Origin: Caecitellus pseudoparvulus
Lineage: Eukaryota > Protista > Bigyra: Bicosoecida
Direction of reading: 5' to 3'
Assembly (NCBI GenBank): GCA_965644315.1
Contig: CBFFRQ010000193.1
Location: forward strand, 1 to 31,131
DNA: 31,131 nt
This document shows positions 1,885 through 31,131 of the stretch, in pieces (positions within the stretch are counted from its first letter, which is position 1; the number at the start of each line of letters is the position of its first letter). The notes under the pieces were generated by a model. That model was given only the letters and a program-made list of their open reading frames with translations. It had not been told where the DNA came from and did not search any database. Made by a program: the position numbers and the translations under genes.

Positions 1885-2107
1885 TTTCCAAATGTCAAGC
1901 TAATCACAAGTTGTGAAGTGCTAACATTGCCTAATCCAGGCGCTCGTGCACCCAAGTGTGGTGTTGCACAGTGCTTGCTGGTTGGGTGGTGCGCACCGGG
2001 GCGGGGTAGTGCGAATTCCGCACACCATCGCACCGTGGCTCCCAGTTTGCGCCCTCGGTCGGGGCATGCACCTGGGATCGACATCAAAAGCATCATTGAC
2101 AAGCATC

Positions 2108-4192
2108 ATGAACGCCCAAGTGGATCAAGTCCTGGGGGTCCTCTTCGTGGAGGGGTGCCTGAAGCGCAAGCAAGTGCTCGGCCCCAGAACAGGTGTCTTC
2201 ACTGACATGCCACGTCGGGGTGCCGCACGCACCTTCGAGCTTGGAGGACCCCTGCCCAAGACTGATCATGATAGTTCATCTTCGGCACGGGACATGTGGC
2301 TCGAGGTCTATGGGGAAGCCGCCGAACGGCTGATCCCAGGGCTGAGTGCGGAATTCGGCAACGCCAATGCGGCCCTGCGCCAGGGACCCACCGGATCGCC
2401 AACCATCCTCGTCACGCTCGGAAGTGAGGGTGATTCACCAACAGTGGCACGTCAACTTCGCATTCTTGCTGCTCAAGAGGACGACTTCGCCATTCGAGTC
2501 GGCCAAGGTGGGTTCGTCGCCGTGGCCTACACCAACACCAAGCAGTTCGCATCGGCGAAGGCGAAAGTGAAGGTGAAGGCCCACCCCACCGCCATCCAAG
2601 TGGCCCACCAAGTGACCAAGGAAGCAACCGAAATCGCCTGCCAGTCAGGTGATGTTGCCAAGGTCATGTGCCTCGTTAGGTCCCACTTCGACCATGGCCC
2701 CGTGCCAGCCCAAGCCGTCCGTCCCAGTGTCAGACAATCCGTCCCCTCCGAGGGTGATGCACCTGTCGACACCAAGACACCATCGACCTGGACTGACACT
2801 CAGCTCGACAAGGCACCGAAGAAGAAGAAGACCCGTCGAGGCAAGCGAGGAAAGGGCAAGTCAGCCGGACGATCCCTCACCTTCGAGGACGTCTTCATCA
2901 AGAACGTCCGGCCACCTGCACCTCGACCAACCTCACCACCTGCCACCCAAGGCTCACCCAAAGATACCGTCACCACCCCTGTGGTGCATGCCATGTTGCC
3001 TTCATCAAGGGTGCAGCGGGGCGTCGACCGCAAGTGGCCGTCCCCCACCCCGTCGGGCGAGGCAAGCCCCGAGGTGCACCGGTATCGGCCGTCTGCAGCA
3101 GCAGCATGGGAGGTGATCACAAGGGTGGTGCCTCTTCATGACAGTGTGCGGACACCCGAGCACCTGGCCGAGTACCCCATCAAGCCTGGCCCTCTGGCCG
3201 ACCTGCTGTCATCGACCCACGTGTACTCTAACGTGGGGGGGCGGGCCTGTGTCCAGGCCTGTCTCGAGACGGCAGCAGGGGAGAGGGTCTTCGAGGCTGG
3301 GGACCTCCTCCTACTCCAGCATGCAGCCACCATCAACGCTGCCCAGCTTGCCTTCAAGCACATGGTCAGGCAGCTGGAGGGGGTGGTCAGTGACTCGTCC
3401 AGCTCGGACATCATGGACGTCGGCCAGAAGCCACCCTCCCCCTTCCGCTCAGACGGGCAACGGGTGGCCGTCTTCCGCAACATGCTGCACCAGCACTCGC
3501 CGGATGACACCTTCCTGGCCCCAGGTACACCACCAGTCCTGCTTCCCGGCCTGCACCTGCTCATCGACCGCATCAACCAAGGGTACCGTGCCCCAGCCGG
3601 GCATGATGACCTTGGCCAGGCCGGCGTCGACCCCAGCCAGGTTGATGAAGAGGGTGACCAAGAGGGGCACCTCGACGGAGTGCTGTATGCCTTCGCACTT
3701 CGAGAGGTGTGGACCGACAACACGGCCCATCTGCAGCTCATCCTCGTCGACCATGATCGAGGCAAGCTGGTGCTGTGGAACCCCGACATCCCTGACCTCC
3801 ATGACGAGCTGCCCCTGCACAAGTGCATGACCCGGCTGGCAGCCGAAGGCATCAACGTCTTGTACCGGATCTGGACCACACCCGAGGCGGGCAGTCCAGC
3901 ACCCTTCCGGGACAGGCTTCGAGGGGCACTCCAGTCTCTCCGAGATGACTTCCCCCCCCTGCCTCACAAGGCCACCGACGGCACCGTGCACCCCCAGACC
4001 CTCATCGCTGGCAAGGGCACAAGGGTGGCCATGCCTCATGGGCGGATGACCCGACAGCAGGCCGCCACCCTGGAGGCTGAGGTCAAGGACCCCCTCAAGC
4101 GGCTGGTGCCTGAAGACGGCGAGGGTCGCCTGCCCAAGGTCAAGGATGTGCCCCACATCTCGATCGGGCAGATGGGTGGACGCCTGATGTAA
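2108..4192 (+). CDS. ORF1-like protein of about 694 aa: possible N-terminal RRM, basic patch, Pro/Thr linker, possible OTU-like cysteine protease domain
   Basis: Intact ORF (track 1946..4192; ATG at 2108 chosen, alternative ATG at 2066). GQGGFVAVAYTNTKQFASAKAKV resembles RNP1 plus helix. Basic patch KKKKTRRGKRGKGK. GGRAC...GHLDGVLYAFAL...LQLILVD...INVLY...GTVHPQTL follows the OTU motif order. The ORF is solid; the domain calls are tentative. Confidence 0.7.
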   Translation: MNAQVDQVLGVLFVEGCLKRKQVLGPRTGVFTDMPRRGAARTFELGGPLPKTDHDSSSSARDMWLEVYGEAAERLIPGLSAEFGNANAALRQGPTGSPTILVTLGSEGDSPTVARQLRILAAQEDDFAIRVGQGGFVAVAYTNTKQFASAKAKVKVKAHPTAIQVAHQVTKEATEIACQSGDVAKVMCLVRSHFDHGPVPAQAVRPSVRQSVPSEGDAPVDTKTPSTWTDTQLDKAPKKKKTRRGKRGKGKSAGRSLTFEDVFIKNVRPPAPRPTSPPATQGSPKDTVTTPVVHAMLPSSRVQRGVDRKWPSPTPSGEASPEVHRYRPSAAAAWEVITRVVPLHDSVRTPEHLAEYPIKPGPLADLLSSTHVYSNVGGRACVQACLETAAGERVFEAGDLLLLQHAATINAAQLAFKHMVRQLEGVVSDSSSSDIMDVGQKPPSPFRSDGQRVAVFRNMLHQHSPDDTFLAPGTPPVLLPGLHLLIDRINQGYRAPAGHDDLGQAGVDPSQVDEEGDQEGHLDGVLYAFALREVWTDNTAHLQLILVDHDRGKLVLWNPDIPDLHDELPLHKCMTRLAAEGINVLYRIWTTPEAGSPAPFRDRLRGALQSLRDDFPPLPHKATDGTVHPQTLIAGKGTRVAMPHGRMTRQQAATLEAEVKDPLKRLVPEDGEGRLPKVKDVPHISIGQMGGRLM

Positions 4193-4606
4193 GTCACCTG
4201 TGGGGGCATACTCCCTGTGCCACACATGACTGAAGCTTTGTGTCGCGACCGACGCACATAGCTGACATCGGACATTGGAAAGTCCAACCCAACCTCACCA
4301 TCACCAACCCAACATCGATACCAACACATCAGGACTCGGCTCAGTGGAAGGGGAAGGCACTTGCAGCAAGATCTGTGAGGCCGCCCCCAAACCTGAGCCG
4401 AAGGGACAGCCGGGCTGGGTCGTGTGCTTGCATCTCAGCAACACCCAGTCCGTGTCGAGTCCATATCCTCCAGCCCACACCGCCACCCAAGCCAAGCAAG
4501 TCGGGTCTCCACCCCTGGACATCGGACCGAGACGGACGAGACTGGACTGGACGGACAAGACAAGAGTGGACCGAGACCTGGACCTACACCTCAAGACCAT
4601 CCCACC

Positions 4607-4807
4607 GGGGCGGGCGCTGAAGCGCCAAGACAGACGGCGACTTATACAACGGACACGAGTCTGTGCTAGTCGCAAAGCCGTGCAAGCGGTGCCGTCGTGG
4701 TGTCTGTGTCACTGCATTCTGTTGTGGCGCAGGTGGCACCACATGTCCAAGCCCAAGCTGTACCATGATGTAGCCTGCATGGAGGCAATCTGCAATGCAT
4801 TGAGTAG
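4607..4807 (+). other. Conserved structured 3'-terminal RNA element, copy A
   Basis: Shares blocks ATACAACGGAC, GTGGTG, TGCATTC, GGCACCAC, GCCCAAGCTGTACC, GGAGGCAA and TGCAATGCATTGAGT with 8686-8887; the stems covary between copies. Confidence 0.8.
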
Positions 4808-4873
4808 CTAACCCTAACCCTAACCCTAACCCTAACCTAACCCTAACCTAACCCTAACCCTAACCTAACCTAA
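4808..4873 (+). repeat. Short internal telomeric tract with TAACC variants
   Basis: 11 units, of which 4 are TAACC pentamers, plus a terminal TAA; same orientation as the terminal array. Confidence 0.97.
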
Positions 4874-7800
4874 GCGAAGTTCCAGGTTCAGCACCGCATC
4901 AGGGAGCTTACACTGGCCGACCCATTCACTGCGCACCAACACATCCGAAAGTTGGCTGGGAAGAAGCGGAAAGGCACAGTGTCCTGCATCCAGTCAGTAC
5001 TCGACAGCAACGGAACACTCATCACGGAACCTGCTCTCGTTCGGTCCACAGTGCGGGACCACATGTCCCAAATCATCAGCTCCCCCCCTCTAGAGCTTGC
5101 CCCACTGAAGTTCGGTTTGGCCCGGCTGCTGCCGTCTGCACAAGATGCCACCGCCTCTCATGATGCTTGGGTCCCAAGTGTGGACCTCATCATGAGAAAG
5201 ATCCAGTCACTCAACCTACACCGCAACCCTGGCACTGGAAGCTTCCAAGCTGAACATCTGAAGTACGCCAGTGAAGCCTTCAGGAAGAAGTATGCTGTTA
5301 CCCTCCGCCAAGCCATCAGCACTGGCTCCTGCCCTGAGGAGTACCACTGTGGCGTCGGGACTCTCATCCCAAAGGCCGCTAGCCAACCCGGACGAGTACA
5401 GACATACCGCCTCATTGTTTGTCGCCCACCTCAAGCCAAGCTGTTCTTCTCTGTGGTAGCAGCTTGTGTAGAAGACTGGGTCCAAAGGTGGATCTCTCCA
5501 GAACAAGCTGGCTTTACTCATGCTCGAAACACGCATGAACAGATACTAGCACTACAAGAAACTTCTGCTGCGTATCTTCGAACAAAGCCGGACGCCAGTG
5601 TCCTCATACTCTTTGTTGACTTCAGAAGCGCCTTCGATACTGTCAGTCACGGTGCGATCATTGAGATCCTTGAGAGCGCAAATCTCCCGAGCGCCCTACT
5701 CGAATGTGTGAAAGACTACATGCGGCGAGCTTCTGTTGCCATCCACACGGGGCACGGCCTCTGCAACCCCCTACCGGTGACAAACGGTGTCCCACAGGGT
5801 GGAGCCCTGTCGCCTCTTCTGTTCAAAATTGCCATAGATGTCCTCTCTCACCGGCTCAGAGAACTACCAAAGCAGGGGGTGGCGGGTGCAGGAGTGCCCA
5901 CACCCCGAGGCCGAGTCACCCACACGCTGTATGCGGATGATCTGGCCTGCCTGGCTACCACACCAGCTGCCCTCCACCGAATGTTTCTCGAAGTCAAATC
6001 TGTGGGCAGTCGTGTTGGACTGACCATAAACCCCAACAAGTCAGGTGTCATGATCTTGACTGGAGCGCAACATGTCAGAGGCATATCAGCGACAGAGAGA
6101 CGAAAGCTGGTCTGGAGATCCCGCTGGCTCAAGTCTGGGGAGATGTTGAAAGTAAAGGGGGCGCCCATCCAACGTACGAGTGTCTACTCGTACCTTGGTG
6201 CCCCACTTTCAGAAAACTTCAGCCGCACCAGGCTGCTTGCCTTGAAGCATGCAACACAATCTTGCACCCGGGCTGGCTTCGCCTGCGGTGCCCTCCTTAG
6301 TGGCGTCTGGCTTAGCCCAAGTCTCAAACAGCGGGTCGGTGCTGCAGCTGTCAACAGCGCCGCCGACTACATCCTTGCCTCTCAGGTCAGCAACTCCGTG
6401 CTACCTCTTCGAGATCTTGACCGAGGACTGGCCATTGCCTTCTCTAAGGCCCAGCTTGGCATGCAGAGTTCACTAGCTCGGATGCACAACTATGCAAAGT
6501 TGGCTGTGTGTGGCATCCTGCCAGCACACATCCGAGCGACAAGATTACGCAGCAACATCTTCAAAAAGTTGCTGAAGAACTTGCACAGCCCCACGCCTAT
6601 AGTCAAAGCCCTGTCATCCAGCCTTCATCAAGCCCTGCGCCAGCTTCCGCCCACCATGGACATGGCCTTTGTCTTTCAGGCCAATGTCCGCCTGGATAGG
6701 AAAGGACCGGGAGGAGTTCCAGACCCCTGGGCCCTGCACGGTCTCCTTGACCTTTGGCTACATGGTTGCCTCCCTGATCGCCGGGCACTTGAGGCAGCCT
6801 GCCAAGAGCCAGCCGCAGACTCATCACCCGAAGCACAGGGGATCGACATCCTTGCTCGGTTGGATCCCCCTCCAACCAAGGCCCAACTCCTTGGACTTGC
6901 TGCCCCGGAGCTGTCAGACCTCTCCCAACCCCCAACCTTCCCAGACAAGACCTCTTGGTCGATCAGACAACATGTAGTCGCCTCGTTCCTCCATGTTGCA
7001 CAAGCGGTTCAATGCCAAGAAGTTGGCTACACCACCACTGGCGAGATGAAGCGCTCAAGGCGGCCTAAGGAGTTCCACGTTGGACTGGGGGCCTGTTTCT
7101 TCACATGGCTCCACCCCATCCCCTCTTCTGTAAACCCACTCTTTTGGGTCCATGAAGATGACCAACAAAGCCGAGTCAAGATCCACCTCTGGCAAACGCT
7201 GCAGGTCTTCAATGGGGGAGACACCCCCACACTCTTCAGCGAATGTCCCTTGTGTCATGGAGTTTCATGGTGTACACTCCATGAACATGTCCTCTTTGAC
7301 TGCCCTCATTACAAACTGCAACCATCGCGGACGAACGCAATGGTTGCAGTGCGGAATTTCCTAGAGCGGTCAAATGACGCGGTGAGGGGGGTGGCCAACG
7401 CCCAACACCTTGAAGTGCCCCCCCTCATCCTGGATGCTGTTGTCCGGGCTGCCGAAGGCCGCTTTGTGGGCCGACCGGGTCGCTTGATCCTTCTTCGCCT
7501 TCTACTGTGCGGCCAGTGGCCCCACCGGTGGGGCCAGCCTCCAACACAGCAGCTTTGGAGACCTGAGGCGGCCGCAGTCCTGAGCAACCCTCATGTTGCT
7601 CTCCGCGGCCCCTCAGGTCCTCTCCGCCCTCCCAAGTACTGGAAACAAGCTCTGGCTGCCGCCACGAGCTTCTCTGTATCTGCGTGGGACGTGCTGGTAA
7701 CATGCATGCTGGGACGTACCTCACAGGCTGATCGCCATGTCCAGGTACACGCCAGGTACCTGTGGTGGGCTGCCCATGGCCTCACGAGTCCACTTCCAGG

Positions 7801-8044
7801 CTTCTCCACCCCTGACCCAACCGCTGTGAGAAAGCATACGCGACATGTTCGCACGCGGCGCTTTGAACGGACTTACTTTCCTGTCAGGGCTGAGCGCAGG
7901 CCTCCTCGCTCCTTCACGAGGCAGGCCACTCTCCTTGATTTTGGTCTCGCACGGCCCGAAGCCCGTGATGACCCTCCATCACCCTCTTCCAACTCGGCCA
8001 TGTCCTCCGAGATGTCCTTGGAAAGTCCATCGTCTTCTGAATAG
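4874..8044 (+). CDS. LINE-type reverse transcriptase (ORF2-like, 5'-partial) with C-terminal CCHC zinc knuckle
   Basis: Motifs YRLI, ISPEQAGF, FVDFRSAFDTVSH, GVPQGGALSPLLF, LYADD (YADD at 5930-5941), GLTINPNKS and YSYLG. Knuckle CPLC-x9-EHVLFDC at 7244-7303. The frame is open from 4874 (AKFQVQHRIRELTLADPFTAHQHIRKLAGKK), with no ATG until about 5064. Confidence 0.96.
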   Translation, partial: AKFQVQHRIRELTLADPFTAHQHIRKLAGKKRKGTVSCIQSVLDSNGTLITEPALVRSTVRDHMSQIISSPPLELAPLKFGLARLLPSAQDATASHDAWVPSVDLIMRKIQSLNLHRNPGTGSFQAEHLKYASEAFRKKYAVTLRQAISTGSCPEEYHCGVGTLIPKAASQPGRVQTYRLIVCRPPQAKLFFSVVAACVEDWVQRWISPEQAGFTHARNTHEQILALQETSAAYLRTKPDASVLILFVDFRSAFDTVSHGAIIEILESANLPSALLECVKDYMRRASVAIHTGHGLCNPLPVTNGVPQGGALSPLLFKIAIDVLSHRLRELPKQGVAGAGVPTPRGRVTHTLYADDLACLATTPAALHRMFLEVKSVGSRVGLTINPNKSGVMILTGAQHVRGISATERRKLVWRSRWLKSGEMLKVKGAPIQRTSVYSYLGAPLSENFSRTRLLALKHATQSCTRAGFACGALLSGVWLSPSLKQRVGAAAVNSAADYILASQVSNSVLPLRDLDRGLAIAFSKAQLGMQSSLARMHNYAKLAVCGILPAHIRATRLRSNIFKKLLKNLHSPTPIVKALSSSLHQALRQLPPTMDMAFVFQANVRLDRKGPGGVPDPWALHGLLDLWLHGCLPDRRALEAACQEPAADSSPEAQGIDILARLDPPPTKAQLLGLAAPELSDLSQPPTFPDKTSWSIRQHVVASFLHVAQAVQCQEVGYTTTGEMKRSRRPKEFHVGLGACFFTWLHPIPSSVNPLFWVHEDDQQSRVKIHLWQTLQVFNGGDTPTLFSECPLCHGVSWCTLHEHVLFDCPHYKLQPSRTNAMVAVRNFLERSNDAVRGVANAQHLEVPPLILDAVVRAAEGRFVGRPGRLILLRLLLCGQWPHRWGQPPTQQLWRPEAAAVLSNPHVALRGPSGPLRPPKYWKQALAAATSFSVSAWDVLVTCMLGRTSQADRHVQVHARYLWWAAHGLTSPLPGFSTPDPTAVRKHTRHVRTRRFERTYFPVRAERRPPRSFTRQATLLDFGLARPEARDDPPSPSSNSAMSSEMSLESPSSSE

Positions 8045-8685
8045 GCGGGGATCTGTGAGAGACAAAGCGCGGAAACAGGCAAGCTTACATGTGTATCGTG
8101 GTGAGAACCACGGTCGTGGTTGACTGCGAAGGCGAGGCTGCTACATGCGCTGTCCTTGATGCTTGGTTTTCTCTGTGAAAAGCAAGGTTATTGGAAAGTG
8201 AATGTTGTCAGTATACGTACCTGTGTCTTTGAGGTCCACAGAAAGACCCACTGGCGGCTCTGCGATGTTGTGGGCGGAATTTGGGAGCGTGAACAGACGG
8301 GCGCCGTGTGCAACGCCGCACGCGGAACTTACAGGTCCGCCACGTCCTGATAGATGATGTGGCTGGAACACCTGTGAACAAGGGAGCAAGCTGGTGTGTT
8401 CTTGGTGGGCGGGGGGACGTTGTTCCGGCGGTGCGCGCTGCTACCACCGGCGTGGTGCAGTGCAGCACCGCCATGAAACGCCACCCCCCAAGGCGGCCAC
8501 TGCGGCTCAGTTCAACGCGCAGTGGCCCCAGGCACACGTGCAGTGCCTGGCAGAGGCCAAGAGATCTGGGGGACTGATGAATTATGATGCGAAATGTGGA
8601 CTGGGACGAAGTAGGAGTGGGCCCGGCCCCCTCTGGCTCAGCCGACTGAGCCGAGAGGGCGCGGGAGGGACAGTTCAGCATGTAT

Positions 8686-8887
8686 GGGCGGGCGCGGGCG
8701 CGCCCTAGCAAGCGGCGGCTCATACAACGGACGTATGTCCGTGATGGCTGCAGACCCACGAGAGTGGGAGCCGCTGTGGTGCCTACTGCAGTGCATTCGT
8801 GTGCTGTGGTACGCAAGGCACCACGAGTGATGCCCAAGCTGTACCGTGCAAGAGTGTGCGGAGGCAAGTTGCAATGCATTGAGTGAG
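8686..8887 (+). other. Conserved structured 3'-terminal RNA element, copy B
   Basis: Homologous to 4607-4807 with compensatory base changes in several hairpins. Confidence 0.8.
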
Positions 8888-9193
8888 CTAACCCTAACCC
8901 TAACCCTAACCCTAACCCTAACCCTAACCCTAACCCTAACCCTAACCCTAACCCTAACCCTAACCCTAACCCTAACCCTAACCCTAACCCTAACCCTAAC
9001 CCTAACCCTAACCCTAACCCTAACCCTAACCCTAACCCTAACCCTAACCCTAACCCTAACCCTAACCCTAACCCTAACCCTAACCCTAACCCTAACCCTA
9101 ACCCTAACCCTAACCCTAACCCTAACCCTAACCCTAACCCTAACCCTAACCCTAACCCTAACCTAACCCTAACCCTAACCCTAACCCTAACCC
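8888..9193 (+). repeat. Internal telomeric tract (about 51 TAACCC units), probably the ancestral chromosome end
   Basis: TAACCC array with one TAACC variant at 9159-9163; abuts non-telomeric subtelomere at 9194. Confidence 0.98.
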
Positions 9194-14639: not shown

Positions 14640-17600
14640 TCAGTCTTTGGGCTGCAGGTTCTTAATGGCGTCAGTGATGCGCTGCTTGAGCGCAGTGGCC
14701 TTTTCCCTGAGCTGCTTCGCCACTTGAGAAGGGTCTGTTCCTGCAGCCAGGCCCAGGCCGCCCGCCAGTGGCATGGCGGAGTTGACCACTGCGCCAAAGG
14801 TGCTGCCGCCCGACATGGCCTGCACGCCCAGCAGGATGAAGACAAGCATGATGACGAGCGAGACCACAAGCACCATGAGGCTGTACAGCAAGACGTCCCA
14901 CGAGAGGCCCATGGCTGAGAGGGCTGCTTCGGTGATTTCCCGCAGCAGGATGTGGATGCCCGCCTTGAACTCCTGGCGGTCCAGCACGTTGTCCGACTCG
15001 ATGACGTCCAGAGACGCGAGGATGCGCTTGGCCCGCTCATTGGTCAGGGGCAGCGACGCATTGGCGGTGAAGTCCACGAACTCGTCGAAGGAGATGCCGC
15101 CGCCGTCCGTGTCAAAGGCGTCGTACAGCAGGTCGATGGCTTGATCGGACAGGCGCCCGTTGACGAGGGGCAGGGAGGCGAACTTGTTGGCGAGCTTGGT
15201 CTTGGCGCCCGCCACGACGCTGTCCATGTCCGCCTTGGCCTTGTCCTTCGCAGCGTCCAGGGCCACCTTGGCCGCTGCAGTTGCCGCAGCGGTGGCCGCA
15301 GAGGCAGCTGCGCCGGGGGACGAGGTGTCGACTCCAGCCCGCTGCAGCTGCTCCACGAGGCCGGTAATTGTGTTTATGATGGTCTCCAGGCGGTCCTTGT
15401 TGAAGCCGCCGAACTGCAGGGCCAGCTTGCGCACGCCGGAGATGTCCCTGCGCGACAAGGACAGGATGGCGTCCACGATGGCCAGCGCGCCGTGCTGCTC
15501 CACCGGCACCACGCTCTCCAGCAGCTGCATGATGTGCTCCTGCCGCTTCCCCAACTCCTCTGCCACCGCTCTGCTCACTGCCAGCGCCTTCTTGGCAGAG
15601 CTGCCGCTGGTGGAGCCCGCTGCAGACACGGCCGCCGCAGCCGCCGCGCCACTCTGCCCTGCCGTCTGTGCTCGGGACGCGACAGAGGCAGCTGAGCCAA
15701 TGACGGACTCAGCCTGTGACGCAGCGGTATTGGAGACGTCTTCCAGGGCACGCAGGCGGGCCTGCATGAGCGCGATGAAGTGCTGGATGACGCCGAGGGC
15801 AGCCACAAGCTTGGGCTCGTTCTGCACCAGCGCCTGTACGAAGACGGGGATGGTGGTGAGGAGCTCACCGGGGTTGCCGCGCAGGAGGATGCCGCCCAGC
15901 GTGACGGCCAGGAACTTGGGGTCGCGCAGGCGCTTGGCGAAGATCTCGTCGCCACTGCCCTGCGACAGGAAGTCCGTCACCATGCCCAGGGATGACAGGG
16001 CGCCTTGTGCTTGGGAAATGCCGCCTGAAATGGCCCCTGCCGCGCTGCCCACAGCTCCCAGAGCAGAGTCCCGCGCACCCATGATGTCTGCACTGAGCAG
16101 GGAGGACAAGTTGGCGCCGCGCACCATGCTATTGGCGGCGTCTTGCGCCTGGCCCGCTGCTGCGCTGGCAGATGCACTCAGCGCAGCCAGAGGCGCTGCC
16201 ACAGACGTCGCGATGCCATGTGAGACTTGTGACGCTGCGAACTTGACCACCGCCATGGAGGCTTGTGCAGCCTGCGACACCTGCCCCTTGCGGGACCGGG
16301 CTACCTTCCTGACGTGTCGCGCTGCAGGACCGCCTGCACCTTGTCCACTGGCCCAAGCAGGCCCATGGCAGACTCGATGGAGGATGGAGACACGCCCTGC
16401 AACAGCTTCACCTCTTCGAAGCTGGTCAGTCCAGGGGGTAGCTCGTGGCCTCCATGAGACACCTCCCTGACCCGCTGCACGATGGCCTCGGCGGCCGGCT
16501 TGGGCAGGCGTCGCAGCAGGACGCGGATGAGGGAGTTCCGGATGCTTTCGTTGTGCAGCAGGGTGAGCTGCAAGGTGTTTTGTGTCAGCATGACGCGGGG
16601 AATACCAAGGATGCGGCAGAGGCCCGTCGCAACGTCGCCTTGCATGAGGGAGAAGAAGCCGATGAGGACACGGTCCACTTCTGGCAGGACAAAGGCCGGG
16701 TTGACGCCCCACACAGCCCTGGACAGCAAGCGCACAGAAGCGCCCTTCACGCCAAAGTAGTTCTCCATCGTGCGGCTGGACATGCCCCGCAGGGACTGCA
16801 GTGGGTGCAAGCCCACCCCCACACTCCCCCGCTGTGCCGCCTGCAGCACAGGCAGCACTTGTTCCAGCAACCAAGGCCAGCGGGTGGTCTCTTCGTCCCC
16901 GCGGTCGCCGGAAGATGCCGCCACAGCTGCAAGGGCAGGGCCGGCAGCCCGCGCCACGGGAAGAATGCGCAGCAATTCCTCCGCAGGCGGCAGACGCCCT
17001 GTCACGAACTTCAGGATGGTGCTGAGCACACGGGCCGTGGCACGCACAGGCTTGGCCTCGCCGCCGGCGTCGTCGGCTTCCTCCCTGCAGAAGGGGATGT
17101 TGCTGAAGCGGGCAGACTCCACACGCGTCAGCAGCTTCAGAGCCCTGTCCAGGTCAATGCAGGCGCTGTCCCGCGTCAAGTCCAGTCCCGCCTCGGCGGA
17201 AGCACGGGCAAGGTCGTCGCGGACAGCCAGAGACTTGACAGCTGCCGCGGCATTGTGGGAGGACAGCGTGCCCATTTCATCTCCGTCGATCATCAACTGC
17301 ACCGTCGCGGAGCTGCTGCGAGCATCGCCCACCAGGCGGTGGAACTGGTTCGTGTGTTCCTCCTGCTTCTTGGCGAACTTGTCGCTCATCTCCGCCTCCA
17401 CGAACTCGTCCAGGCGGTCTCGCTGCGAGTACAGGTCAGACACAAACGCCATCTGCATGCGCATGGCATCGTGCACGGGCAGGTTGGCGCCGTTCACTGC
17501 CTCCACCATGTCCAGGCGCAGCTCCTCAGCCACGGCCTGCGACGTGAGCAACTCCCCTATGGGACGGTAACCTGCCATGGCCCGCGCATTCATGAGCTTC

Positions 17601-20600
17601 ATCTGGGCGCGGTGCACGTGGAAGCGGCAGTGGAACTTGCCTCGCATGACGCTGACGGAAAAGGCAGGGTAAATGGGCATGCCTTGCAGGTCCGGGTTCT
17701 TGAATGCGACGCCCATGGGTGCGTCGAAGCTCCTGTTCAGCCCGAACGTCATGGTGCGCTTGTCGTAGTCCACGGCGCAGCTGATGATGTCCCCGTTCTC
17801 CCACTCGCTGCCAAAGGAGCCGTCATCCCCGCCATTCCACTTCTTCCGGCGCTGGCCGTCCCAGGCCCACGAGTTGGGGTCGTCGCCCACGCCATTGTTG
17901 CGCTTGGTCGTGAAGGCGTTGTTCACCCAGCCCACCTGCAGGTACCGGTTTCGCCCAGAGAACATCTGCAGCTCGTAGTAGTACCTGCCTGATGTCACCG
18001 CTGCGCCTGGAATGGCCACAGTGGGGAACGTGGACGCTTTGCTGGTGTTCAGGGAGTACCGGACACGGCCACTGCTGTCCCCCATGAACAGCCCATCGAT
18101 GCCCAGGATCTGGTACTTCCGCCTGCCAGACACCATGGGCAGGGGGCGCGTTGGACCGCCAGCGTTGAACTCGGGCGCGTACTTGCTCTGCAGCACCTTG
18201 CGGCTCTCGCTGCCCGCATACCGCAGCGCGTCGTCACTGCCGTCCATGACTGCAAAGCCAAAGTAGTCCTCCGCCTCTGCCACCTGGTCGCCGCCCTTGG
18301 GCGACATAGCTGAGCCGCGTCGGGGGCTTCCCTTGGAGTCTGGCGAGCCGAAGCCCTGCTTCTTGCTCTGCCCTGTCAGCAGCCGCATGGTACTCATCTT
18401 CAGCATGGCGTCCTCCTTGTGTTCGTCCAGGTCATCATCATCCTCACCAGGGTTGCCGCTGGAGGAAAGGCGGCCGGGGAAGCCACCCTGGGCGGGTTTG
18501 GCTTGCCAACTGCCAGGCTTCTGCTTCTCTTCCGCTTCAAATCCGCCTAGGCTGTCTGCTCGACCCGACGCAGGGGTGGGCAAAGGGGGCGGCGCCTTGG
18601 ACTCGCCAGCGCCATCCTGCGGAACAGACGATGATGACTCGTGCAGGCCGCTCGCACCTGAGCCCGTCAGCGTCGCAGAATGCTCCGCGCGGGCATTCAC
18701 AGCCGAGGGTCGATGCCTGGCGCCAAATCCGCTCAAGTCCACCTTGGACACTTGCGTGGAGGGATCCTCGGCGTGGCTTGCTTCGGACAAGCAGATGAAG
18801 TTGTTGTCCATGTCCAGAGTCATCAGCTTGATCATACGATCGGCGCCGGTGGTGATGAAGAGGAAGTCAATGGCAGCGGACAGCCGGTCCACCCGCAGTG
18901 TCGGCATGGAGGAGCTGATCCACGGCCTCACCTTGCCCAAAAGCCCATTGCTCACGGGCACGATCTGCGTGATGCTGCCCTCGTGTTGGGGTGCCATCTC
19001 AGCCACCACCCGCCAGTCCATCCACAATGACTCCGGGACATGTGCAGAGCGAGGCGCACCGAGTACGGCCAGCAGCCGCCCACGTGACGTGCCCACCAGG
19101 ATGACGTCGTTGGGGGTGGGCATGCTGGGGCGCGGCGCATCCACCACAATGACCTCCTCCTCCTCGCTCATGGACGCCTGCTTCTCAGTGGCAGCAGCCA
19201 CGTAATCCAGCCACACCTGCCGCTGAATCTTGCCGTCATCGTCGGTGGCCTCCCACTTCACCGCCAGGGGGTTCGCGATGGACGAGACCTGCGTAATGCG
19301 CTCCCCTGTCAACAACTCGATGACGTCGGCGGCAAAGTGGTTCAGAGCACGCGCTTGCTCCGTAACATTGCTGAAGTAAATGCCACCAGTGCTCGTCACC
19401 GTCGCAAACCACGACAGAGCTCCCCAAGCCTTCTGGTTGGCAGGGACGTGGTCAATGAGGGGCAGTTGGCTCTTGTACTTCAACTGCAGCCCCGTGACTG
19501 GAGCTGCGGCAAACTCACGGGAGGCGTCTGTGTCTGGCTCTAGCCTGTTCCGCACCTCTCGCGTGGCCCCGACAAAGGCAGAGGGGAAGGGGAAGAAATG
19601 AGACACGATGCCGACGGGGATGCCATCATCGGGAATGAGGCCGTGAAGCAGCATGCGTGCCTGTCGCTCCTTCTCCAGGGTCGCCTCGTTCCCAGTCTCC
19701 AACAGTCCAAACCCGTTGCCGCAGTGGAAGACATAGATCTCCCGCCAAGCAGTGAGCAGGTACTTCGCGTCGTAGTCGCCGGTGTCTGGATCCAGGAGGG
19801 GCCAGTGTGCTGTGAAGTTGCTCAGGCGCCCCGGCAGCAGCTTGGAGGTCATGTGCTTGGCTGACTTCAGCCACTTCGTAGGGGCGCCCAACGGCTCGGC
19901 ATCAAGGTTGGTCAGTCGCCACAGCACAATGGTCTTCGACGCAGTCTGCACGAAAAGGGCTGGCTCTTCCTCCGTGGGGTACCGCTTCGTGCTTTGGACG
20001 AGCGTTCGAGCATCCATGAAGCACTTGCCGTCCTCCCCCGTCAACGGAAAGTCCAGCTTCTCCAGCCTGACGGGAATGGGCTCGTACCCCTGGCCAGGCG
20101 GCACGCTCATCTCGCCTAAGAACCCCGGTAGGTCGCTATCGCCTGAGTCCGCAACATCCGCGGCCAGATCGTGCACTTCCACAGGGGCGAAGTCGCCCTC
20201 CACACGGTCGCTGGAAATGCCCCACACGCAGACACCGACTTTGTCAATGCCTACCAGAGCCACTGACCGCGCCTCATGCGTCATTCGCTCAGCGCGGCAC
20301 AAACACTTGACTGCTTCGCCTTCCGTCTGCACGCCGTGGCCCAGCTCTTGTATGTACCACAAGCCGGCATACACCTGCCGCACGCGCACAGAGCCTCGGG
20401 AGTCGCCTGTAACGAGGCGCAAGCAGGCGTGACCTTCATCCGGAGACGAGTTCCGGATGAAAGCGGCGGCAGTGATGCCTTCAAGAGTGGCCACTGACGA
20501 CGTCGGGTGCGGCACAATGAGGTGTGGCACGATGCTGCCGCCGCAGTGCTCATCGTCAGCCCTTGACGTAGCGATCCCGTGAACATCGAACATGGCTGTG

Positions 20601-20734
20601 TTGAAGTCAATGGCTGTGTTGAAGTCGATGGCTTCACACAAAGCCCGCAGGCACTCAGGTGCCTCAACTTCCTCCACAGGCTGGTGCTTGAAATCCAAAC
20701 GCCAACACCTCTCGAGCAGCACTAATTCGTCCAT
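14640..20734 (-). CDS. Large protein of about 2000 aa: possible beta-propeller-like N-terminus, SPRY domain, helical region, EF-hand pair, C-terminal transmembrane segment(s); frame break near 16300-16340
   Basis: ORF 16301..20734 has SPRY motifs SGRYYYELQM, LQVGW, GVGDDPNSWAWDG, WENGDIISCAVD and IYPAFS. ORF 14640..16874 has LYDAFDTDGGGISFDEF and LDVIESDNVLDRQEF, then a hydrophobic stretch LLYSLMVLVVSLVIMLVFILLGV. Joining the two ORFs needs a short intron or a 1-nt frameshift. Confidence 0.75.

Positions 20735-26597: not shown

Positions 26598-31131
<4,534 letters not shown>

Follow-up and report, generated by a model that had tools for sequence, protein, structure and literature searches.

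A truncated LINE and its probable reverse transcriptase-less relative, stacked between telomeric tracts at a chromosome end of Caecitellus pseudoparvulus

The chromosome end considered here is the left end of contig C193 in the assembly of the marine protist Caecitellus pseudoparvulus (GCA_965644315.1; 30.6 Mb, 215 contigs), from which a window of 31,131 nucleotides (nt), the whole stretch of DNA analysed, was taken. Two elements, unit A and unit B, lie in this window between tracts of telomeric repeats (Table 1). A first-pass annotation, made from the letters of the window, had given the order as telomere, unit A, telomere, unit B, telomere and subtelomere, and the coordinates of the tracts and the strands of the open reading frames (ORFs) bear this out: both units are on the plus strand, with their 5′ ends distal. 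The annotation had also described a common 3′ terminus fused to CTAACCC, and this too holds, as the last ∼200 nt of A and B are 70% identical and CTAACCC follows directly after both. On the distal side of unit A the directly adjoining telomere units are CCCCTAA variants, and the first ‘AAC’ and the last ‘CTAAC’ of the unit cannot be separated from telomere sequence. The reading developed here, which we consider probable, is that two independent insertions took place at this one end, both by members of a telomere-restricted superfamily of long interspersed nuclear elements (LINEs) with an apurinic/apyrimidinic endonuclease (APE): a truncated copy of a family that we call B1, and a full-length relative, A, that has no reverse transcriptase (RT).

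Table 1. Features of the chromosome end (positions in the window; UTR, untranslated region; aa, amino acids).
Feature	Position	Strand	Basis or remark
Terminal telomere tract, (TAACCC)∼314, perfect units, reaching the contig start	1–1884	+	Letters read
Unit A, 2,923 nt, full-length telomeric element without RT or APE	1885–4807	+	At least 47 full-length copies in the genome
A 5′ UTR, presumed internal promoter region	1885–2107	+	Homology with full-length B1/B2 at their 5′ end
A ORF, 694 aa from ATG 2108 (likelier) or 708 aa from in-frame ATG 2066	2108–4192	+	Orphan; corresponds to the LINE N-terminal region
G7 run in the A ORF	3235–3241	+	
A structured 3′ tail, common to all B-type families; invariant CAATGCATTGA plus 4 nt, then CTAAC	4606–4807	+	
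Telomeric spacer between A and B, 63 nt, irregular (CTAACCC, CTAACC and CTAAC units)	4808–4870	+	
Unit B, 4,017 nt, 5′-truncated B1 telomeric LINE	4871–8887	+	Comparison with other B1 copies
B1 polyprotein remnant, 1,056 codons, open, without start context	4874–8044	+	
Reverse transcriptase domain RVT_1	5366–6079	+	Pfam, E = 3.3e-30; sole Pfam match in the unit B frame
C-terminal Cys/His motif, CCHC-type (C-x2-C...H...C)	7244–7312	+	
B1 structured 3′ tail, homologous to the A tail	8684–8887	+	
Proximal telomere tract, (CTAACC)51, abutting unique subtelomeric DNA	8888–9193	+	

A genome search with unit B gave seven copies at 96–100% identity and a dozen at 75%, all of the matches beginning at the first bases of the query. 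The window copy is 100% identical to the copies on C197 and C163, and 96% identical to those on C67, C134 and C44. In the six other B1 copies (C163, C197, C134, two on C44, and C67) the sequence upstream of the point where the window copy starts is coding sequence free of telomere repeats, and only in the window do telomere repeats stand at that point. The left edge of unit B (4871–4874) is a truncation point. It falls at about residue 1281 of a B1 polyprotein of 2,335 aa, so that the first ∼1,280 codons are missing, and the ∼3.78 kb that unit B lacks correspond to the 5′ UTR, the N-terminal region and the APE. Among the B1 copies the 5′ truncation amounts to 0, 560, 780, 2,596 and, in the window, 3,779 nt; variation of this type is a classic LINE signature and shows that the copies derive from separate insertion events. 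Unit B is presumably a dead copy, which keeps only the RT, the CCHC motif and the 3′ UTR.

The parent families are best described from their intact copies. Full-length B1 is ∼7.8 kb, and its copy on C67 has a single ORF of 2,335 codons with matches to Exo_endo_phos and RVT_1; the copy on C163 is similar, with a frame break. The family at 75% identity, B2, reaches 2,386 codons in its best copies, and a further family at 67–70%, B3, has frames of 2,093–2,250 codons, the 2,093-aa copy again matching Exo_endo_phos and RVT_1. Intact copies have one ORF of 2,100–2,390 aa, in which an orphan N-terminal region is followed by APE, RT and the CCHC motif. Exo_endo_phos lies upstream of RVT_1 in full-length B1, B2 and B3, and Pfam gives no other nuclease in the 2,335-aa polyprotein, placing the APE upstream of the RT only. 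The first-pass annotation had noted that the RT shows no restriction-like nuclease; the absence of a nuclease is true of the window copy and untrue of the family. When the APE of the family is aligned with those of other LINE proteins, the catalytic motifs N, E, D-x-N, D and D-H are all present. The annotation had taken the RT to be LINE-like rather than of Penelope type, and this was sound: the best matches among solved structures are human L1 ORF2p (E = 3e-18) and then R2. With B as the query, a word-indexed protein search gave 11 distant proteins that combine APE and RT; as these nearest library proteins are unnamed and only 24–37% identical, the RT is not assigned to a named clade such as L1, Tx1, R1 or Jockey. 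B1 and B2 have 70% identity in their N-terminal regions, where B3 is 43–44% identical to either, with RT identities of 68–83% across the B families. Taken together, the LINE-type RT, the APE, the variable 5′ truncation, the constant 3′ ends and the absence of long terminal repeats (LTRs) mark the B family, as judged from its sequence, as an APE-type non-LTR retrotransposon.

Full-length B-type elements also change the interpretation of unit A, whose body had been thought unrelated to that of unit B. The A protein is 41–47% identical, end to end, to the N-terminal regions (first ∼800 residues) of the B1, B2 and B3 polyproteins (for example, 42% with E = 2e-168 against residues 50–795 of B2 ORF1), and it ends at the point where the APE begins in these families. 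Furthermore, positions 1–364 of unit A have 74% nucleotide identity to the 5′ end of full-length B1 and B2 elements, including those on C135, C18 and C30. The homology of the A ORF to the N-terminal region of the polyprotein, together with the common 5′ UTR, makes A an RT-less relative of the B families and not a complementary half. A keeps the 5′ UTR of the family, the N-terminal (Gag/ORF1-like) part and the structured 3′ tail, and has lost the APE and RT; the 413 nt of its 3′ UTR upstream of the tail have no counterpart in B1. Its identity to B1 and B2 is 45–47%, compared with 43–44% between B3 and the same two families, so that A is about as diverged as B3. The annotation had itself named a full-length B containing the ORF of A as grounds for giving up its model, and full-length B does hold the region that A encodes; the divergence speaks against a recent deletion. 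A is thus an old RT-less lineage that stands on its own within the superfamily; it is not an unrelated gene, nor did it arise by a fresh deletion.

These comparisons bear directly on the model first proposed for the locus, a split retrotransposon in which A supplies only an ORF1 function, B supplies only a nuclease-free RT, and the two genes, mutually dependent, travel as separate RNAs. Taken alone, the window has just this appearance, with A lacking an RT and B lacking both an N-terminal domain and a nuclease. The left end of B is, however, a truncation, and the longest B copies, when checked for an ORF1 and an APE of their own, have both: in intact members of the family a single ORF of up to 2,386 aa carries the A-like region together with APE, RT and the CCHC motif, and it is to this N-terminal region that the A ORF is homologous. 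We regard the split model as extremely unlikely.

The A ORF carries a signature of purifying selection. An ENA metagenome contig provides an independent example of the arrangement, with telomere, A at 97% identity, 17 nt of telomere and the 5′ end of a B-type element, and A variants of ∼97–98% identity occur as DNA in public sequencing runs from marine metagenomes and other samples. Between the A ORF and a metagenome variant there are 38 differences, 24 synonymous and 14 non-synonymous, compared with a chance expectation of 26–34% synonymous; in the C-terminal half of the ORF, 20 of 22 differences are synonymous. This excess of synonymous changes shows the A protein to be under purifying selection. 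Outside its own superfamily it is an orphan. With queries kept free of telomere-repeat letters, a word-indexed search with A against 5.8 billion proteins gave nothing but a metagenome copy at 97%, and when the N-terminal alignment was used for an exhaustive profile search of 1.84 billion representatives, the sole match was a fragment of 48 aa. JGI metagenome contigs scanned with the N-terminal alignment and with the RT alignment gave no confirmed relatives, and Pfam gave no match to the A ORF or to its conserved C-terminal domain.

Within the A ORF there is a basic K/R cluster, and the conserved C-terminal domain has invariant Cys, His, Asp and Asn residues, located at C395/C399, H555/H563, D562/D564 and N572/D574 (numbered from ATG 2066). 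The invariant Cys pair (C-x3-C) is at the start of a predicted helix, and the invariant His, Asp and Asn lie on strands ∼160 residues later. Language-model neighbours were seen in Peptidase_C58 and C39, at only 0.85. AlphaFold2 models of the protein have a predicted local distance difference test (pLDDT) score of 38.7 for A and 45.6 for the C-terminal domain, which is too poor for a firm call of the fold; a structural search with the pLDDT-46 model nevertheless placed calpain, Josephin, interpain, staphopain, streptopain and ubiquitin-specific proteases at the top, with Z values of 5–7 that cover the beta part only. These three weak, concordant hints provide a lead that the conserved C-terminal domain might be a papain-like (clan CA) cysteine protease. 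A wider proposal can be built on this lead, in which an N-terminal papain-like protease would process the giant polyprotein, A would be selected because its protein (through telomere targeting, proteolysis or both) and its copies buffer the chromosome ends alongside telomerase, and the whole would represent a mutualism of the HeT-A/TART style that arose independently in a telomerase-positive stramenopile. We consider this combination rather unlikely.

The 3′ tail is the feature that links all of these elements. Seven tail types, from A, B1, B2, B3 and three others, have ∼200 nt in common, in which CAATGCATTGA is invariant and is followed by 4–5 variable nt and then CTAAC. The consensus fold of the tail has 61 pairs, with 96% of cells paired. 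It contains 21 compensated (double-sided) pairs, compared with 8.5 ± 2 in shuffled alignments, none of which (0/500) gave as many, and with at most 5 when the partners were slid. Covariation of this type is good evidence for a conserved RNA structure that the autonomous elements share with A, and a conserved structure in the tail is the kind of feature that could let an RT copy a partner in trans. It is plausible that A is a passenger of the B-family RT by means of this common tail.

The tail also defines the junctions with telomeric DNA. There is no poly(A) at the 3′ ends of the elements; the tail runs directly into CTAACC. Of 38 occurrences of the tail motif examined, 36 are 3′ ends followed by CTAA(C...) in a single phase, and the other two are an internal coding-region match on C138 and a tail on C67 that is joined to non-telomeric sequence. 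The phase of the 3′ junction is constant whereas that of the 5′ junction is variable. Telomeric spacers after the 3′ ends range from 4 to 396 nt with a median of 13 nt, 20 of the 36 being 13 nt or shorter. Short spacers often abut the truncated 5′ end of the next element, and the telomere units adjacent to the junctions are often irregular.

Different routes can be proposed by which such junctions might form. In the one that we favour, the RNA of the element would end in the conserved tail and about one telomere unit of the C-strand. This unit would pair with the G-strand of telomeric DNA where the endonuclease has nicked it or where the chromosome ends, naturally or by erosion, and the 3′ OH would prime reverse transcription, giving a copy whose fixed 3′ end is proximal and fused to CTAACC. 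Intact B-type elements would supply the RT in trans, and recognition of the common tail by this RT would allow A to be copied; telomerase would then re-cap the end after insertion. A related possibility, which would follow the mode of HeT-A/TART or Athena, is that the endonuclease plays no part at telomeres, the elements instead being attached at the very end of the chromosome (at a G-strand 3′ overhang or an eroded end) or joined by template jumping of the RT. The constant phase of the 3′ junction agrees with this, and so do the spacers, which are mostly tiny and frequently border a truncated neighbour when terminal tracts measure hundreds to ∼1,900 nt; random nicking within long tracts should leave longer proximal remnants, and the short spacers fit attachment at short or eroded ends, or template jumping, better. 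Against it, internal tracts could also shrink after insertion, and the APE motifs are conserved among families that are only 43–70% identical in the N-terminal region and 68–83% in the RT, which argues that the nuclease is used and would matter to the element. Attachment independent of the endonuclease is thus a serious possibility, though in our judgement a somewhat doubtful one.

The distribution of the elements in the genome gives further support to a telomeric lifestyle. At least 47 full-length copies of A, all at ∼100% identity, are found at 37 contig ends, along with truncated copies that start at positions 242, 1024, 1181, 2422 and others and end in the same tail. Every plus-strand copy is at most 15.1 kb from the start of its contig, and minus-strand copies are within ∼12 kb of the contig end (1–9 kb from the distal edge of the copy). 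A search of the genome with the RT protein gave 108 matches in lineages at 99, 83, 70, 62, 51, 44, 38 and 35% identity, many in open frames of 2,000–3,400 codons, and 107 of them are 5′-distal and no more than ∼21 kb from a contig end. The proposal that copies would prove to lie only at chromosome ends in this polarity is therefore borne out for every placed A copy and for all RT matches except one. Several orders of elements were seen (A-A-B1, B2-A-A, A-B2-B2 and A-A-A-B3), and no two of the 11 A 3′ junctions examined are alike in both spacer length and neighbour. Because order and spacing vary, as the annotation had suggested should be checked, A and B are not one fixed unit. The genome also encodes a TERT, with a match to PF12009 (TERT RNA-binding domain; 79 bits) in a frame of 1,389 codons on C77; this frame, together with the long perfect terminal repeats, indicates that telomerase and the elements coexist.

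Two groups of RT matches differ from the rest. The sole exception to the terminal placement is a 165-aa fragment at C23:10663–11160 (−), 65% identical to B1 and within an open frame of 208 codons; it is oriented the ‘wrong’ way, at a distance of 10.6 kb from the left end, and no telomere repeats are nearby. A distant telomeric RT lineage, 38% identical to B1, is represented at C147:54563–55693 (−) and C42:707665–708795 (−), where the frames of 3,394 and 2,779 codons, respectively, are much longer than those in the other families.

Identical A-B2-B2 arrays with the same spacing are present at C18:1752–20191 and C30:5357–23795, and either whole arrays move between ends or one end was assembled twice. 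Such an array raises the question of whether break-induced replication or subtelomeric recombination could have brought a copy of the A-B stack, ready-made, to the window from another chromosome end. The C18 and C30 arrays offer a precedent, and copies of the elements are ∼100% identical. The truncation point of the window B copy was, however, found in no other B1 copy, and the 63-nt spacer was found after no other copy of A, and we consider it very unlikely that the stack arose in this way. That the two elements were inserted independently agrees with the earlier view that the end was extended twice, B first and then A; this order is the simplest, and it is not forced if the endonuclease inserts into internal tracts.

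Several points weigh against our reading of two insertions by an APE-type telomeric LINE superfamily. The APE is a very divergent domain, with a weak match to PF03372 (27–33 bits against a cut-off of 24.5), and sequence and profile searches against solved EEP enzymes give E values of ∼1, none below 0.7. At least 21 copies of A, otherwise identical, have six G residues in place of the G7 run and so lose the frame shortly ahead of the conserved Cys motif, compared with ∼29 full copies in which G7 keeps the frame intact; the abundance of the G6 version, comparable to that of intact copies, may be either an assembly error in a homopolymer or a sign that the A protein is not needed in cis, with a frameshift allele that amplifies no less well than the intact one. 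Among public runs no RNA run with A was found, and two doubtful RNA runs gave few short contigs on A and no usable transcript evidence. In addition, the placement of A relative to contig ends leaves out C95, C129 and C137, and block-duplicated arrays (C18 and C30) mean that copy number overstates the number of retrotransposition events.

Retrotransposons dedicated to telomeres have been recognized in only a few groups, namely insects (flies, silkworm and others), fungi (rice-blast and Fusarium), rotifers and Giardia, and they are central to ideas on the relation between telomerase and retroelements. The polarity seen here had been likened to that of HeT-A/TART, Athena and MoTeR1/2, and the likeness is good for the arrays and the restriction to telomeres, although this system lacks defining features of each of those. 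The Jockey-clade HeT-A, TAHRE and TART elements of Drosophila form head-to-tail arrays at chromosome ends with their 5′ ends distal, and they too show variable 5′ truncation and a 3′ region in common. HeT-A and TAHRE provide the parallel for A: beside several autonomous lineages there is a much more abundant element without an RT, and its protein is homologous to the Gag part of one of its autonomous relatives. Unlike the Drosophila system, C. pseudoparvulus has kept telomerase and long TTAGGG tracts (TERT, and 1.9 kb of perfect terminal repeats). Its elements end in a telomere unit rather than oligo(A) and have one giant ORF rather than gag and pol, and the N-terminal protein is without a detectable relative.

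Members of the CRE/SLACS group, the MoTeRs and FoTeRs have a restriction-like endonuclease. The Magnaporthe MoTeR1 and MoTeR2 elements and the Fusarium FoTeRs resemble the present families as non-LTR elements embedded in TTAGGG telomeres, with an RT-encoding element and a shorter RT-less one that have common termini, in stacked arrays with short telomere tracts between them (PMC1635262, PMC12857005). In the C. pseudoparvulus elements, in contrast, the nuclease is of APE type and N-terminal to the RT, Pfam gives no restriction-like endonuclease C-terminal to the RT, and the protein of the RT-less partner has its homologue in the N-terminus of the autonomous element. The R1-clade TRAS and SART elements of Bombyx are likewise APE-encoding LINEs that occur only in telomeric repeats, in a host that has telomerase, with a fixed phase at the 3′ junction. 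Pairing between the 3′ end of their RNA and the target repeat has been proposed (PMC7265360). They differ in having two ORFs and poly(A), where the elements described here have a single ORF and a structured 200-nt tail without poly(A), and both orientations are found among them, in separate families, where here there is one orientation and mostly 1–3 telomere units between stacked copies. Endonuclease-deficient Penelope-like elements such as Athena and Coprina are also restricted to telomeres in telomerase-positive hosts and have telomere-complementary 3′ ends (PMC8557442), whereas the RT here is LINE-type (RVT_1, with L1 ORF2p and R2 as the best solved matches) and the family has an endonuclease.

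A literature search found no description of such elements in stramenopiles. In this small-genome, telomerase-bearing protist nearly every assembled chromosome end is occupied by one superfamily, comprising at least five autonomous lineages (35% to 99% RT identity) and a Gag-only partner. Among LINEs it is unusual for its single giant ORF and its orphan, possibly proteolytic N-terminal module. The elements may be of benefit to the host, and C. pseudoparvulus offers a tractable unicellular system in which to ask whether they help telomeres or merely exploit them, how an RT recognizes a structured tail with a telomere unit at its end, and why a protein-coding partner without an RT outnumbers the elements that drive it.

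Other features of the window and of chromosome ends elsewhere in the assembly were also recorded. In the subtelomeric part of the window, the first sizeable gene with a Pfam match is an intronless ORF of 1,477 aa at 16304–20734 (−) with a SPRY domain; the long ORFs adjoining it have no Pfam match. A perfect array of hexamers, (GTCGCT)32, at 28299–28491 is inside a long minus-strand open frame (26598–28691), again without a Pfam match. On C208 a B1 tail that seemed to be interstitial was rejected as such: its neighbour is a large element with inverted repeats, the contig end is no more than ∼20 kb away, and the polarity is correct. This neighbour (C208:38868–56563) is an AT-rich element of ∼17.7 kb with terminal inverted repeats of 418 bp, and it abuts telomeric LINE tails. 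Several copies of it are present, on C212, C149, C40, C160, C144 and C133 (14708–15094) as well. One of its ORFs has a weak lipase/alpha-beta-hydrolase match, and integration near telomeres by an endogenous virophage or a polinton-like element is a possible origin.

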